IMG/VR virus record: IMGVR_UViG_3300025161_000004
Location: 182,769-246,768 of that record
Direction: 5' to 3' (one strand)
DNA: 64,000 nucleotides
Below the pieces are notes generated by a model. It saw only the letters and a list, made by a program, of their open reading frames with translations, made no database searches and was not told where the DNA came from. Below, in pieces: positions 43,040 to 51,353 of this stretch. Positions within the stretch are counted from its first letter, which is position 1, and the number at the start of each line of letters is the position of its first letter. The position numbers were made by a program, and so were the translations under genes.

Positions 43040-43110
43040 GCCCGAATGGTGTAAATAGTAGCATACTTGCTACGCAGCAAGAGGTGTTGGTTCAAGTCCA
43101 ACTTCGGGCC
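43040..43110 (+). pseudogene. Atypical tRNA with a 6-nt anticodon loop (Arg ACG-like)
   Basis: CTTGC-TACGCA-GCAAG; D loop lacks GG; acceptor and T stems intact. Confidence 0.5.
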
Positions 43111-44583: not shown

Positions 44584-45714
44584 ATGAATATATTCCATAA
44601 CTTCATTCATAGTAATGAAATATTTGTTAAACCTAATGACTGGATTTCCATAAAAGAAAATTACAGTCAGGAATTTATTATTAAACAATTATCAGATGCC
44701 ATTGTTGAATATAATATAAAATTACCATATCAAATAATCACACATCAAGATATGGTTGACAGCTATAATGATCTTATGAATTTCGATTCTCTAACTCTAA
44801 TTAAAAATGGGAAATGGGTAAGTAAATTTGAATATAAATATCACTTTAACGAAATCTATATTGATCTGAGTTCTGTTGGTGCTAAAGCATCTAACTATTT
44901 TCATCAAGTTGAGAGATGGAAGTGTGATGCAACAGGTTATCCTTCACCGCAAAAAACATGGGAAAAAGAACGATTCAGAATTACACTATTGAAAGCGTTA
45001 TTTTCATTGAAAGTTTCAGAGATAAACCCTCATATTTTACGTAATATTATTTCTCTTAGAAAATATATAGCACCTCAATTTAGACCAAGTGCAGCGAAAG
45101 CAATATATGATTACTTTAAGGCTGAAAGAGTTCTTGATTTTAGTATGGGTTGGGGTGATAGATTATTAGCGGCACATACTTCGAAATATGTGAAGAAATA
45201 TATCGGATTTGACCCTAATAAAAACCTTTATAGTGGTTATTTAAGTCAAATTGAGGAGTATAATAAATTAAATCTGTTAAAAAAAGAATTTGTTCTATAT
45301 CCACTTTGTGCTGAAGATGAGAATATTGATTTGTCTAATGAACAATTTGATTTAATATTCACATCACCACCATATTTTGATAAAGAAAAGTATGATCAAT
45401 CGGATAGACAATCATATAAGAGATATAAAAAGTTTGATGATTGGTTGAATAATTTTTTATGTAAGACTATTGAGTTAAGAATTAAGAATTTAAAAGTTGG
45501 TGGATATTTAGTAATCAATATAAGTGATATTTATACCAGAAAAAAACTTTATAAGATATGCGATGGTATGAATAATTTTATTCATAATAACTTACCTGAT
45601 ATGAAATATATTGGTGCTATAGGATATAGAATGCCTAAAAGACCACAGAGTATTTCAAGTGATCAAGTAGGTATATATGGTGAACCTATGTGGGTTTATC
45701 AAAAAATATCATGA
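44584..45714 (+). CDS. Amino-DNA methyltransferase (N4C/N6A)
   Basis: VLDFSMGWGDRL SAM motif, then FTSPPYF. Confidence 0.85.
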   Translation: MNIFHNFIHSNEIFVKPNDWISIKENYSQEFIIKQLSDAIVEYNIKLPYQIITHQDMVDSYNDLMNFDSLTLIKNGKWVSKFEYKYHFNEIYIDLSSVGAKASNYFHQVERWKCDATGYPSPQKTWEKERFRITLLKALFSLKVSEINPHILRNIISLRKYIAPQFRPSAAKAIYDYFKAERVLDFSMGWGDRLLAAHTSKYVKKYIGFDPNKNLYSGYLSQIEEYNKLNLLKKEFVLYPLCAEDENIDLSNEQFDLIFTSPPYFDKEKYDQSDRQSYKRYKKFDDWLNNFLCKTIELRIKNLKVGGYLVINISDIYTRKKLYKICDGMNNFIHNNLPDMKYIGAIGYRMPKRPQSISSDQVGIYGEPMWVYQKIS

Positions 45715-46040: not shown

Positions 46041-47328
<1,288 letters not shown>

Positions 47329-47352: not shown

Positions 47353-47565
47353 ATGAGAAACAAAATTTTCATAAGCCATGCTGCACCTGATGACAACGAT
47401 TTTACTAAATGGTTGGCATTAAAGCTAATTGCCTTGGGTTATGAGGTATGGTGTGATGTTTTATTCTTAGATAGAGGAGTTCACAGTAAACTTATGTATG
47501 AGTTGACAGTAAATTTCTGTAAAATAGCCAATAGCGGCAACATTCCAAATGTTATTATGTTTTAA
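47353..47565 (+). pseudogene. 3'-truncated TIR-domain gene
   Basis: KIFISHAAPDDNDFTKWLALKLIALGYEVWCD, then diverges and stops at 70 aa. Confidence 0.75.
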
Positions 47566-47690: not shown

Positions 47691-47764
47691 GTAACCAAGA
47701 TGATTAAATTTTCGTATAATACAACAAATACGATCCATTAGCATAGTGGTTAATGTAGGACTCT
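47691..47764 (+). repeat. Second copy of the direct repeat (intact tRNA 5' half)
   Basis: See 45964-46036. Confidence 0.85.
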
Positions 47765-47803
47765 CTAAAAGTCTTGAGGTGGGTTCGATTCCCACATGGA
47801 TCA
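47732..47803 (+). tRNA. Amber suppressor tRNA(CTA)
   Basis: GATCCAT/ATGGATC acceptor; GGACT-CTCTAAA-AGTCT; GTGGG-TTCGATT-CCCAC. Confidence 0.88.
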
Positions 47804-47932
47804 CAAAAATTTATTAAATATGATCTTAAAGATATATCACAACACCAATCGGAAGGTTGAATATGAACTGTGGGCTGTGGTGTTTTTATTTAAAAATCAT
47901 AAAAAATAACTTAACAATTTGAAACTTTTTAA

Positions 47933-47950
47933 TAACTTTGTACGTATATA
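47933..47950 (+). promoter_or_regulatory. Promoter of the amber-gated unit
   Basis: TAACTTTG at 47933-47940, then ACGTATATA. Confidence 0.65.
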
Positions 47951-47970
47951 TAAAAAAAAACAGCACAACA

Positions 47971-48324
47971 ATGAAAAGGTAGATATCTAAACTAATTACT
48001 ATAACCAGACAGGATTTACCTATTGGTTATCAAATTGCACAATGCTGCCATTCTGTTGCAGATTTTGCGTACTATCAACCAGAATTATTTAAATATTGGA
48101 GAGAAAATTCTAACTATAAAATATGTCTCTCTGTTAAAGACGAACAATCTCTAATCAAACTTCATAAAAAACTTATTGATAAAGGCGCACAAGTTGTCGC
48201 ATTTATTGAACCTGATTTACAAAATCAAATGACGGCAATTACCTTCTATGGTACTCCTGAGTATCAGAAAGTAACATCATATCTACCACTTGCAGGCAAA
48301 CAATTAAACCATAATATACTATGA
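47971..48324 (+). CDS. Pth2-like peptidyl-tRNA hydrolase with in-frame TAG at codon 4 (missed by the ORF track)
   Basis: ATG AAA AGG TAG ATA...; readthrough gives 117 aa with TRQDL..GYQIAQ..HS...W...K..LSVKDE..L...F.EPDL.NQ.TAI...YLPL. Confidence 0.8.
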
Positions 48325-48578
48325 AATAGATAGTCGATTCAAATCAGAAAGAAGTGATTGTATTCCACTTTAACAAGAAACATTTGGAGGATCCAAATAT
48401 TCCTATGTGGACAATCAAACATAAAGGTAAAACCTATTATGTACATCACTTAACAAGCTATATTGGATTTTCGACAAAAGAAACTCCAGATAATGAGCAT
48501 ACTAAAGGTAGTTTAAAATTTAAAGGTAAATTAAAGATATATGAAAAAGATAATCAGATACTTGCAGAGATAAGCTAA
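48321..48578 (+). CDS. Hypothetical protein with in-frame TAG at codon 3
   Basis: ATG overlaps the upstream TGA (ATGA); ATG AAA TAG ATA GTC... is in frame with ORF 48354-48578. Confidence 0.7.
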
Positions 48579-48586
48579 TATCTAAA

Positions 48587-48659
48587 GCAGGGATAGCCAA
48601 GAGGTAAGGCATGACACAGCAAATGTCACATTCAGGTGGTTCGAGTCCCCTTCCCTGCT
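48587..48659 (+). tRNA. tRNA-Cys(GCA)-like with A33
   Basis: TGACA-CAGCAAA-TGTCA; U73. Confidence 0.65.
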
Positions 48660-48665
48660 CGATAA

Positions 48666-48736
48666 GTCGATGTGGCTGAGTGGTTAGGCATAGGATCGCA
48701 AGTCCTATTAGATTGGTTCGATTCCAGTCATCGACT
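48666..48736 (+). tRNA. tRNA-Cys(GCA)-like with C33
   Basis: TAGGA-TCGCAAG-TCCTA; U73. Confidence 0.65.
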
Positions 48737-48880
48737 CTTTAATTAATAAAGGTATGAATTACAAGTAGGTAACAGCAAGACCACCATAATTGGTGTATTA
48801 TATCATCTTATATATGTTGTATGTAGCTCTGATGATATGAAACATGATCAATAATAAATTTAAGTTAAAAAAAAACAATT

Positions 48881-49853: not shown

Positions 49854-50216
49854 ATGGGAAAAGAGGAAGCAATAAAAGAATTTTATTGGGAAAGAATTAG
49901 AGGATTTATATCCGAAAATGATATTGATGCTCGTTGGATTCTTCGTAAATATACAGACAATAAAGCTCATGGTTCATTACGTATTGTAAGTCATCCAGAT
50001 TTGAAACCTGGGTATTTACGTGCATTCTGGACTGTTGTTACTAAGCGTAGTCCTAAAACACAACAAGAAATTCTTGAAACAATTGAAAAATATAAAATGG
50101 ATATAAAAGAACTTGAGTTGTATTCTGTTGATGAAAATATCGAAACAACTTCAAGAATAATAGAAGAACCGCTAAAAAAAATTGAAGAATTATTTGGAGT
50201 AAAAATTTTTGAATGA
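49854..50216 (+). CDS. Hypothetical protein
   Basis: 120 aa ORF in operon. Confidence 0.75.
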   Translation: MGKEEAIKEFYWERIRGFISENDIDARWILRKYTDNKAHGSLRIVSHPDLKPGYLRAFWTVVTKRSPKTQQEILETIEKYKMDIKELELYSVDENIETTSRIIEEPLKKIEELFGVKIFE

Positions 50217-50479
50217 AAATGGAAGAGAAAAATTTAACACAAGAAGAATACGATTATATTAGACCTCAACATTATAAAGAGAAAGATGGTCGTGAAACTT
50301 GGGAAGTAATGGTTGAATTATTTGGTGCTGAAAGAGTGGCAGATTGGTGCGAATTAACTGCATACAAATACAAAGCACGCATGGGTAAGAAGCCTAATGA
50401 AAGTATTGAACGTGAACAAGCTAAAATTGAATGGTATGAAAATAAAGCAAGAGAAATTAGAGAATCACTTAAAAAGTAA
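50213..50479 (+). CDS. DUF3310-family protein
   Basis: P.HY...ETWE.M......C...AYKY..R.GKK. Confidence 0.8.
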   Translation: MKMEEKNLTQEEYDYIRPQHYKEKDGRETWEVMVELFGAERVADWCELTAYKYKARMGKKPNESIEREQAKIEWYENKAREIRESLKK

Positions 50480-50513
50480 TATTTCTGATATTGTGACTAA
50501 AACAATTGATGTT

Positions 50514-51353
50514 ATGAACAGTCAATCAGAAAATGAGGATACTAAAGCTCTTAGATATAATAAAGGGAAGAACCGTCATGACTTACTTCATCCTCAAGCA
50601 ATAGAAGATTTAGTTAAAGTTCTTACGATTGGTGCTAATAAATATGCAGATCGTAATTGGGAAATGGGTATGTCGTGGTCATCCGTGCTTGCCTCACTTA
50701 AAAGACATTTAAATGAATTTGAAAAATCAAAAGATTATGATGCGGAAAGTGGGCTACTTCATATTGCACATGTTGCGGCTAATGCGCATTTTTTAAATGC
50801 ATACTATTATCTCTATCCACAAGGTGATGATAGACCTAAAAGATGGCTTGAATTACCAAGAATAGGTTTGGATATTGACGAAGTATTAGCTGATTGGTTA
50901 AATCCTTGGAGAGAGAAATTTAACATAACTAACGTTCCAAATTCATGGTATTTCGACAGAGAAATACGTCATAGATTTGAAGCACTTAGAGATCGAAATG
51001 AACTTGATGATTTTTATTTGAGTCTTAAACCATTGATAGACGCTAAAGATTTACCTTTTGAACCACATTGCTACATTACGTCAAGACCAATAGCCACTGA
51101 AACAACCATCAAATGGTTAGATCATCATGGCTTTCCTGCAAGACCAGTATTTACTGTTAACGTTGGAGAATCTAAAGTAGATGTTGCAAAGAAAGCTGGT
51201 GTGGAAATATTTATTGATGATTCATTTGATAACTTCAGGGATTTCAATAAAAATAAAATCTTTTGCTATCTATATGATAAACCACATAATAGAAGATACG
51301 ATGTTGGACATATGAGAATAAAATCGTTACATGATTTACCAATATTGAAATGA
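50514..51353 (+). CDS. dATP/dGTP diphosphohydrolase (DUF5664) fused to a HAD 5'-nucleotidase-like domain
   Basis: RYNKGK...GANKYADRNW.MG...SLKRH...D.ESGL.H.AH.AAN; GLDIDEV...FIDD. Confidence 0.82.
   Translation: MNSQSENEDTKALRYNKGKNRHDLLHPQAIEDLVKVLTIGANKYADRNWEMGMSWSSVLASLKRHLNEFEKSKDYDAESGLLHIAHVAANAHFLNAYYYLYPQGDDRPKRWLELPRIGLDIDEVLADWLNPWREKFNITNVPNSWYFDREIRHRFEALRDRNELDDFYLSLKPLIDAKDLPFEPHCYITSRPIATETTIKWLDHHGFPARPVFTVNVGESKVDVAKKAGVEIFIDDSFDNFRDFNKNKIFCYLYDKPHNRRYDVGHMRIKSLHDLPILK

Follow-up and report, generated by a model that had tools for sequence, protein, structure and literature searches.

We analyzed a 64,000-nt DNA stretch, hereafter the window, which spans positions 182,769–246,768 of the IMG/VR virus record IMGVR_UViG_3300025161_000004 and is the last 64 kb of this 246,768-bp record. 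The record has a GC content of 28.6% and a CheckV completeness of 79%, and 35 of its 36 tRNA genes, as detected with ARAGORN, fall in the window. Its contigs turn up repeatedly in metagenomes from sediment, hot springs and soil, and no DNA-level relatives of the window were found among deposited phages. Within the tRNA cluster lie an amber suppressor tRNA gene with the anticodon CUA (tRNA-CUA), which is the sole suppressor among the 36 tRNAs, and two protein-coding genes on the same strand. One of these encodes a protein similar to the peptidyl-tRNA hydrolase (PTH) Pth2, and the other a small protein of predicted all-beta structure. The tRNA gene is upstream, at 167 nt from the PTH2-like gene. 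Both protein genes carry an in-frame TAG codon almost directly after the start (Table 1); genes that begin in this way, with an ATG, a few sense codons and an in-frame stop, are referred to here as gated.

Table 1. Position of the tRNA-CUA, PTH2-like and small-protein genes and of the neighbouring features, counted from the first nucleotide of the window.
Feature	Position	Strand	Basis or remark
Amber suppressor tRNA, anticodon CUA	47732..47804	+	ARAGORN and sequence reading
Spacer between tRNA-CUA and the first gated gene	47805..47970	+	Sequence reading
Spacer motif TTTGTACGTATATATA	47937-47952	+	Also upstream of the homologous gene in L156; altered in L155
PTH2-like gene	47971..48324	+	ATG AAA AGG TAG ATA TCT AAA CTA...; ends with TGA 48322-48324
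Putative gate codon 1 (TAG at codon 4, next base A)	47980..47982	+	Sequence reading
Small all-beta protein gene	48321..48578	+	Ends with TAA 48576-48578; 85 codons including TAG
Putative gate codon 2 (TAG at codon 3, next base A)	48327..48329	+	Sequence reading
GTG, candidate ungated start	48354..48356	+	Opens the listed 74-aa open reading frame 48354..48578
Two tRNA-Cys(GCA) genes	48587..48737	+	Directly 3' of the small gene; ARAGORN
Weak terminator-like hairpin	48782..48795	+	After the tRNA-Cys pair

After the TAG of the PTH2-like gene, no in-frame ATG, GTG or TTG occurs for 82 codons. The protein matches the Pfam profile PF01981 with 37.3 bits (cut-off 23; E 3.5e-9) over profile positions 2–81 of 115, position 2 being aligned two residues after the TAG. 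As the profile starts so close to the TAG and no canonical start follows for 82 codons, the gene appears to need readthrough. The same cut-off is passed by the fusion protein of locus L070 and by the gated gene of phage XacN1, both described below. For the 113 aa that follow the TAG, AF2 predicts the alpha/beta fold of Pth2 (pLDDT 94.2), and the 15 best PDB matches to this model are all Pth2 (probability 1.00, TM 0.58–0.76). The protein shares with canonical Pth2 this fold (TM 0.70–0.76 to 2zv3, 3erj, 1q7s and 1xty) and a Pfam score above the cut-off, but it belongs to a divergent subfamily, phrog_1866 ('unknown function'), that lacks the GKGK loop. That loop carries the catalytic Lys of Pth2, whose catalytic residues also include an Asp (numbering of S. 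solfataricus Pth2). In the sequence alignment, the invariant E-P-D (D78) and H23 are present in the PTH2-like family.

Pth2 of the archaeal/eukaryotic type has already been noted in jumbo phages (PMC7824862). The canonical GKGK-type Pth2 genes of XacN1 (ORF295), Xoo-sp13, RsoM2USA (RsoM2USA_157), SCTP-2 and phiM12 have plain starts, and the early stop therefore marks particular subfamilies and not every phage PTH. The annotated PTH of XacN1 (ORF295) was considered as a suppressor target and discarded on account of its plain start; the gated gene of this phage is a second, divergent PTH2-like gene.

The small gene opens with ATG AAA TAG ATA GTC GAT TCA AAT CAG AAA GAA GTG, the last codon being the GTG at 48354. 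A preliminary description of this DNA had stated that the ATG (48321-48323) overlaps the TGA of the PTH2-like gene, that codon 3 is TAG and that the frame continues into the 74-aa open reading frame (ORF), all of which is correct to the base, and both TAG codons are followed by ATA as it said. An independent soil run yielded a contig with the same TAG at 47980; for the TAG at 48327, coverage (depth about 43) comes solely from the probable source run.

The small protein is predicted to form an all-beta domain (model pLDDT 94). Its family has the signature FHFNK...TKETPDN.HTKGSLKF and the invariant residues H13, N15, K16, P25, W27, K30, G33, Y37, T49, N55, T58 and G60. It gave no match in Pfam or PHROG, nothing below E 0.02 in a PDB profile search and E values of at least 0.17 with Foldseek against the PDB, the best VIA-align Z being 4.0. 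Its neighbours in AFDB and the ESM atlas are uncharacterised and mostly viral, and its 357 sequence homologs are all 'hypothetical'. These data define a new small protein domain that partners PTH2-like enzymes. In some phages the small domain is extended at its C-terminus by a further domain of about 100 aa, and a phage tmRNA is also present in some of these loci: tmRNA genes lie 0.5–1.5 kb from the long-form small gene and tRNA-CUA in L020, L030, L031, L033, L034, L036, L037 and L046, and are a further ribosome-rescue element in the neighbourhood of the module.

What makes the early stops significant is the comparison with other phages and not the genome of the window. We counted in this genome the ORFs of at least 60 codons that would be opened by an in-frame ATG located no more than 11 codons upstream of their bounding stop. 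Such an ATG occurs in 13 of 106 TAG-bounded ORFs (12%), 33 of 388 TAA-bounded ORFs (8.5%) and 15 of 176 TGA-bounded ORFs (8.5%), and the early-TAG pattern in this genome is by itself not above chance.

A profile (A3) built on ten PTH2-like genes retrieved 80 more viral loci. In 79 of them an in-frame TAG stands right before the domain, with an ATG 1–9 codons upstream, and 70 have a tRNA-CUA gene within 3 kb on the same strand; the lone plain-start locus (L149) has no tRNA-CUA within 3 kb. When gates are counted over all loci as distinct 60-nt contexts, 65 of 67 PTH2-like contexts are gated, and none of these 65 has an ATG, GTG or TTG between the TAG and the conserved block. They come from viral contigs of 25–49% GC. 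The second plain-start context, L009, has a tRNA-CUA in the locus.

For the small-protein family, a scan of viral contigs yielded 65 loci. Forty-four of 67 distinct contexts are gated, with an ATG, 1–5 codons and then TAG, and 23 have a plain ATG start; in most loci the invariant block (V)VFHFNK follows the in-frame TAG at a distance of 4–11 codons. Gated starts, on contigs of 30–57% GC, read 'MQ*IEYACKDVVFHFNK', 'ML*NCKEVVFHFNK' or 'MAM*VENLRECVFHFNK'. The closest relative, L156, whose protein is 92% identical to that of the window, begins with ATG AAA TAG ATA ATC GAT TCA GAC CAG AGA GAA GCA ATT GTA TTC CAC, and L155 with ATG AAA AAC TAG ATC GTT GAT TCA. L156 has the same context and the same extension as the window, with GCA in place of the GTG at 48354; in the relatives this GTG aligns with Val or Ala codons (GTT, GCA). 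The segment between the TAG and the GTG is kept as IVDSNQKE in the window, IIDSDQRE in L156, IVDSDKRE in L155 and IVNCEKKD in L008. The preliminary description named initiation at 48354 together with homologs lacking this N-terminal extension as what would speak against it; the second part fails, as the homologs do have the extension, and L156 has GCA at the position of the GTG.

The public protein P0002 ('MKNQIVDS...') is the product of the L155 gene, its Q being the TAG translated under code 15. As some public gene calls translate TAG as Q, protein-level searches hide the gate, and the N-terminal 'Q' of many listed homologs may be a TAG. Code-15 calls on short contigs (P0002 / L155:652-918; L155:153-641) write such TAGs as Q. 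A gated small gene is also found in the cultured Rhizobium phage RHph_I1_18, where a Shine-Dalgarno sequence precedes ATG AGT GAG TTC ATG TAG AAC GAA, the first canonical start thereafter lies only within the conserved block, and a tRNA-CUA gene is located directly downstream. Of five gated small-family loci without a tRNA-CUA nearby, four have one elsewhere in the record, and the record of the fifth is only 33% complete.

As a control, all fetched loci were searched for an ATG followed by no more than 8 codons, a stop and an ORF of at least 70 codons. With TAG as the stop this gave one homologous cluster of 111 members, the largest TAA or TGA cluster having 3. With the gate kept on both genes in more than 100 distinct contexts, the earlier argument that the two TAGs of the window are not independent nonsense mutations stands. 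The preliminary description makes no mention of the tRNA-CUA that would serve both gates.

Sequences around the gate are consistent with initiation at the ATG that precedes the TAG. Among 26 distinct gated contexts with a clear GGAG or GAGG, 25 have this Shine-Dalgarno sequence 5–9 nt before that ATG; the same sequences lie 14–31 nt before the codon that follows the TAG. The base after the gate TAG is A in 82, G in 23, C in 4 and T in none of 109 contexts; among 199 genuine stops of this genome, by contrast, 97 have a T in this place. In E. coli, a stop followed by U is more prone to termination and one followed by a purine to suppression. No readthrough RNA structure in cis was apparent: for the 91-nt segments around the two TAGs, the predicted folding was no better than that of shuffled sequences (z -1.27 and +0.42).

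Among the phages compared, the gate codon covaries with the anticodon of the suppressor. The PTH gene of Atu_ph07 reads GAAAGG N7 ATG ATT GGC GAA CAC TTT TGA ATT, with TGA where 13 relatives have TAG, and the sole suppressor tRNA of this phage has the opal anticodon UCA (PMC6102473). Phosso has AGGAG N7 ATG AAG TAT TAG GTT and a tRNA-CUA, annotated 'tRNA-Undet', 4.6 kb upstream; its 13 metagenomic relatives have TAG in all cases. In the Atu_ph07/Phosso clade a seven-codon leader, M[LI]TNSFL, is kept through synonymous changes, and the leader is therefore translated in frame. RsoM2USA, which has one tRNA-CUA (PMC8504454), shows AAGGAG N7 ATG TTG TAG ATT and no alternative start. In XacN1, AGAGGA N8 ATG AAG TAG ACC heads a 283-aa protein whose C-terminal half is PTH2-like; this phage has two tRNA-CUA, for which its authors could not find targets (PMC5852040). 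Cluster C mycobacteriophages have the tRNA-CUA just downstream of the gene, which begins GAAGG C ATG TAG GTG in Alice and GGAGG C GTG TAG GTG in Myrna.

Some GenBank entries of these phages likely hold annotation errors. The PTH coding sequences of Phosso (XYS97424.1, L002:534-866) and Atu_ph07 (AUZ95035.1, L001:540-872) are annotated from an internal Met that lies beyond the conserved KLRIYSIIRGDL strand, Myrna gene 86 (L154:1963-2034), labelled 'tRNA-Ser', has the anticodon CUA, and the small gene of RHph_I1_18 (L003:1465-1713) is unannotated.

The PTH2-like and small genes belong together in several arrangements. They are neighbours in about 30 loci, and in L070-72 the PTH2-like and small domains are fused in frame in one ORF behind a single ATG AAA TAG. 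In Atu_ph07 and Phosso a protein of 173-176 aa, encoded two genes after the PTH, ends with the small domain. The small domain is always found among tRNA genes, which, together with the fusion, fits the earlier suggestion of a translation-related protein. The double gate proposed in the preliminary description, in which the small protein would need two readthrough events, rests on coupling through the ATGA overlap, and this coupling is not conserved: a tRNA gene lies between the two genes in L155 and L156, and in about one third of the contexts the gate is on the PTH2-like gene but the small gene starts at a plain ATG. The module is rearranged between the window and L155/L156, with both gates kept. 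The intervening gene is a tRNA-CUA (L156:2840-2915, L155:545-615), and the PTH2-like frame runs on into the tRNA sequence.

A third gated family, with a domain of about 180 aa and a WHDIGKP motif, was also observed. It stands alone in L083:4147-4722 behind ATG AAG TAG ATA, and forms the N-terminal part of a fusion with the PTH2-like domain in XacN1 (L178:940-1800) and Xoo-sp13 (L177). This domain has no Pfam match and is absent from the record analyzed here.

Taken as a whole, these data are best read as a conserved translational gate, dependent on the suppressor tRNA, on a tRNA-related module, and we hold this reading to be quite probable. The module would consist of three parts on one strand of the phage tRNA cluster, namely the tRNA(CUA), the PTH2-like gene and the small beta-protein gene. 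Ribosomes would initiate at an ordinary ATG, reach the UAG after 2–3 sense codons and pause there, and elongation would continue only when the phage tRNA(CUA) beats release factor 1 (RF1) at a UAG set in a context of weak termination (next base A or G, never U). As the UAG is so near the start, a failed attempt would cost only a di- or tripeptide. The stop would thus act as a gate, like a feed-forward AND gate, and the two proteins would be made solely upon, and in proportion to, the expression, maturation, charging and competitiveness of the suppressor tRNA. Our best guess is that peptidyl-tRNA or N-blocked aminoacyl-tRNA is what the PTH2-like enzyme and its partner act on, or that the two serve in ribosome rescue. 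Their supply would be tied to the tRNA because stronger suppressor activity, or an attack of the host on tRNAs, would increase the need for them. The anatomy of the module, its conservation, its linkage with the tRNA, the covariation of gate codon and anticodon and the Pth2 fold are shown by the sequences and models; readthrough itself, the identity of the inserted residue and the purpose of the gate are inferred. We also lean, with rather less confidence, towards a general form of this reading, in which standard-code phages of many lineages keep a suppressor tRNA with dedicated targets, two to three tRNA-related genes, for the PTH2-like hydrolase, the new small beta domain and the third domain described above, that each carry one matching early stop, amber or, in Atu_ph07, opal. 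The proposed circuit, with its stop within the first ten codons, would operate in phages of Mycobacterium, Rhizobium, Xanthomonas, Ralstonia and AT-rich bacteria.

Several observations weigh against a gate of this kind. The GKGK loop of Pth2 is replaced by GY in the window and by AY, PT or GA in relatives (alignment to Bit1), and hydrolase activity of the PTH2-like protein is therefore not assured. About one third of the small-gene homologs start at a plain ATG, so that the gate is dispensable for the small protein, and the opal covariation comes from a single phage, Atu_ph07. In the window, moreover, a GTG follows the TAG of the small gene and the homolog P0060 begins at MIFHFNK, so that an ungated short form is possible, and an ungated product could be made from the GTG at 48354 in this window only. 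Taken further, the small gene of the window would simply start at this GTG, as the annotated 74-aa ORF does, and the upstream ATG AAA TAG would be irrelevant. The GTG is in frame and preceded by the purine-rich AGAAAGAA, P0060 indicates that the N-terminal extension is unnecessary for the fold, and an ATG shortly before the bounding stop is common by chance (about 10%). The purine run carries little weight because the host group shows no Shine-Dalgarno use. We consider this start unlikely, as L156 keeps ATG AAA TAG ATA and yet has GCA for the GTG, 43 of the 44 gated small-family contexts have no ATG, GTG or TTG between the TAG and the conserved block (the window being the lone exception), and the residues between TAG and GTG are conserved in L156, L155 and L008. 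The codon after the TAG raises another point against the gate. It encodes Ile or Val in 94 of 109 contexts (86%), ATT being the commonest, and this preference, which a pure gate does not explain, could point to reinitiation. The ATG, 1–8 codons and TAG would then form a mini upstream ORF, with reinitiation at the adjacent AUU, AUA, AUC or GUN, no suppression, and sensitivity to RF1. AUU is a known rare start codon (infC), and in Alice and Myrna the GTG directly after the start codon and TAG has a Shine-Dalgarno sequence at an ideal spacing of 7 nt, so that the gate may be bypassed there. We nevertheless give reinitiation little credence: all gated contexts (65 of 65 and 44 of 44) use TAG, even though TAA far outnumbers the other stops in these AT-rich genomes, most loci have a linked tRNA-CUA, the phage that shows TGA is precisely the one with a UCA suppressor, and AAC, AAT, CAA, GAA, CAC, ACA, GTA and GTT, which also follow the TAG, are not start codons.

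The UAG might also serve to place a particular, perhaps unusual, amino acid that tRNA-CUA carries, possibly through a Cys-related pathway, as the module is bordered by tRNA-Cys(GCA) both in the window and in many other loci and, in Phosso, coding sequences for cysteinyl- and serine-tRNA synthetases flank tRNA-CUA. Such a role seems very improbable given that the TAG varies in position from codon 2 to codon 10, lies 0–11 residues before the conserved block and outside the folded core, and is missing from about one third of the small-gene homologs; besides, one clade member uses TGA with a different tRNA, and the acceptor stems of the suppressor tRNAs are very diverse. Finally, the TAGs could be nonsense mutations, signs of pseudogenes, assembly errors or part of a genome-wide code 15, for which nothing speaks beyond the in-frame stops themselves; the public gene call for the window skips to an internal ATG (P0007, 57 aa). 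We regard this as extremely improbable: flanking codons vary while the gate is kept in the contexts counted above, the contig from the independent soil run confirms the TAG at 47980, TAG read as sense adds almost no plus-strand coding and 20 of 199 long ORFs (about 10%) terminate in TAG. The ORFs of the plus strand add up to 13649 aa under the standard code; if TAG is read as sense, the total is 14746 aa. The record does possess one trait of code-15 phages, the phage tRNA with a CUA anticodon (47732-47804). Genome-wide code 15 was rejected on this small gain in coding and on the fact that no gene besides the two of the module needs readthrough. Only these two genes of the record look gated; eleven further ATG..TAG candidates in the 246.8-kb record were unconvincing, either because an ordinary ATG follows within a few codons of the TAG or because the frame is of low complexity.

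A suppressor-dependent gate has counterparts in known systems. In recoded phages (TAG to Gln, code 15; Lak, crAss-like, 'Agate/Jade') the recoding has been proposed to delay late and lytic genes until the suppressor tRNA is available (bioRxiv 10.1101/2021.08.26.457843). The module described here would share with them genes whose in-frame stops make expression conditional on a phage suppressor tRNA, and the same gate or timer logic. Recoded phages, however, show genome-wide or block recoding of dozens of genes, with many stops at any position and a low coding density under code 11, whereas the gated module resides in genomes with the standard code, in which TAG still ends about 10% of the genes, and involves two to three families with one stop each, in the first 2–10 codons, and an adjacent tRNA gene. 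A synthetic feed-forward 'leak dampener' combines an early amber codon with a co-regulated suppressor tRNA in an AND gate that removes leak (PMC7969014). That device is engineered, and the phage gate would be its natural, widespread counterpart.

Lambda bar minigenes, ORFs of two to three codons (AUG AUA UAA), poison Pth-deficient cells by peptidyl-tRNA drop-off. An unsuppressed gate would likewise be a minigene of 2–9 codons heading a gene of Pth type, so that short ORFs are tied to peptidyl-tRNA hydrolase in both systems. The bar minigenes differ in having no in-frame protein behind them and no dedicated suppressor tRNA. Pth also detoxifies the tRNA-acetylating toxins TacT/TacA (PMC9241777); by analogy, a phage PTH that undoes damage to charged tRNAs might have an anti-defence role. 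A gate based on stop recoding has thus been proposed in a genome-wide form and engineered in a synthetic one. In the literature searched, mostly outside subscription journals, no description was found of early-stop-gated PTH genes or of a gene-specific, 5'-terminal and codon-matched gate on tRNA-related genes in standard-code phages.

With the gated genes, plausible targets are available for the first time for the 'orphan' suppressor tRNAs found in standard-code jumbo phages, XacN1 and RsoM2USA among them. The papers on RsoM2USA (PMC8504454) and Atu_ph07 (PMC6102473) guess that 'several genes' are suppressor targets. Such targets would be missed because the stop lies at the extreme 5' end, where gene callers start later, skip the gene or translate TAG as Q. 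If true, the proposed gate would explain orphan suppressor tRNAs in phages without genome recoding, and would amount to a natural AND gate at the level of translation, or to a sensor for the status of tRNA and RF1, that might belong to the defence against host tRNA-targeting systems. A suppressor tRNA with few gated genes could also be a stepping stone to full stop-codon recoding. The gate can be tested in cultured phages with easy hosts, for instance cluster C mycobacteriophages in M. smegmatis, and the pairs of leader and tRNA, both amber and opal, would provide natural parts for tight translational switches.

Regarding the suppressor itself, ARAGORN labels tRNA-CUA 'Pyl' solely from its anticodon. 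The tRNA is of the elongator type, with a paired G1-C72 and an anticodon stem (GGACU/AGUCU) without a run of three G:C pairs, and its gene encodes no CCA. An initiator tRNA that would read UAG as a start codon was considered and rejected, as there is neither a 1:72 mismatch nor three G:C pairs at the foot of the anticodon stem, and UAG as a start codon was likewise rejected because relatives have an in-frame ATG with correct Shine-Dalgarno spacing before the TAG. No close paralog that would indicate the amino acid was found among the 35 other tRNAs of the phage, and 36 distinct suppressor tRNA sequences from related loci were too diverse for an assignment. Besides the window, tRNA-Cys(GCA) adjoins the module in L008, L012, L017, L021, L025, L044, L063, L098-L118 and L153, and the synthetase coding sequences of Phosso (L167:1-2143) are those annotated as cysteinyl-tRNA synthetase and serine-tRNA synthetase. 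This neighbourhood could hint at the amino acid of the suppressor, or at a shared origin.

In the remainder of the locus, the spacer motif TTTGTACGTATATATA does not repeat above chance within the window, and a search upstream of the module found no sigma-70-like promoter on the plus strand. The hairpin after the tRNA-Cys pair is a possible end of the unit. ARAGORN reports abnormal anticodon loops in tRNA-like genes at window 43040-43110, L070:4400-4474, L009:3515-3597 and L010:2858-2951 (2-base 'cg', 4-base 'cgca', 'gc' and 'ta'), all in tRNA clusters, the one of L070 immediately preceding tRNA-CUA; these may be intron-bearing, frameshift-type or decayed tRNAs. Just upstream of tRNA-CUA, a 70-aa ORF (47353-47565) matches the start of TIR over its first 40 residues and then stops; with 26.2 bits against PF13676, just below the cut-off of 28, it resembles a TIR-domain gene that has been truncated or split. 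A short way upstream of the module there are two DNA methyltransferase-like genes (44584-45714 and 46375-47328), one of which matches N6_N4_Mtase (PF01555, E 7.6e-55), the other being a 376-aa ORF with an SPPY motif. A 318-aa ORF (50397-51353) overlaps the preceding 88-aa ORF (50213-50479) by about 80 nt in a different frame, and its true start may be located further downstream.

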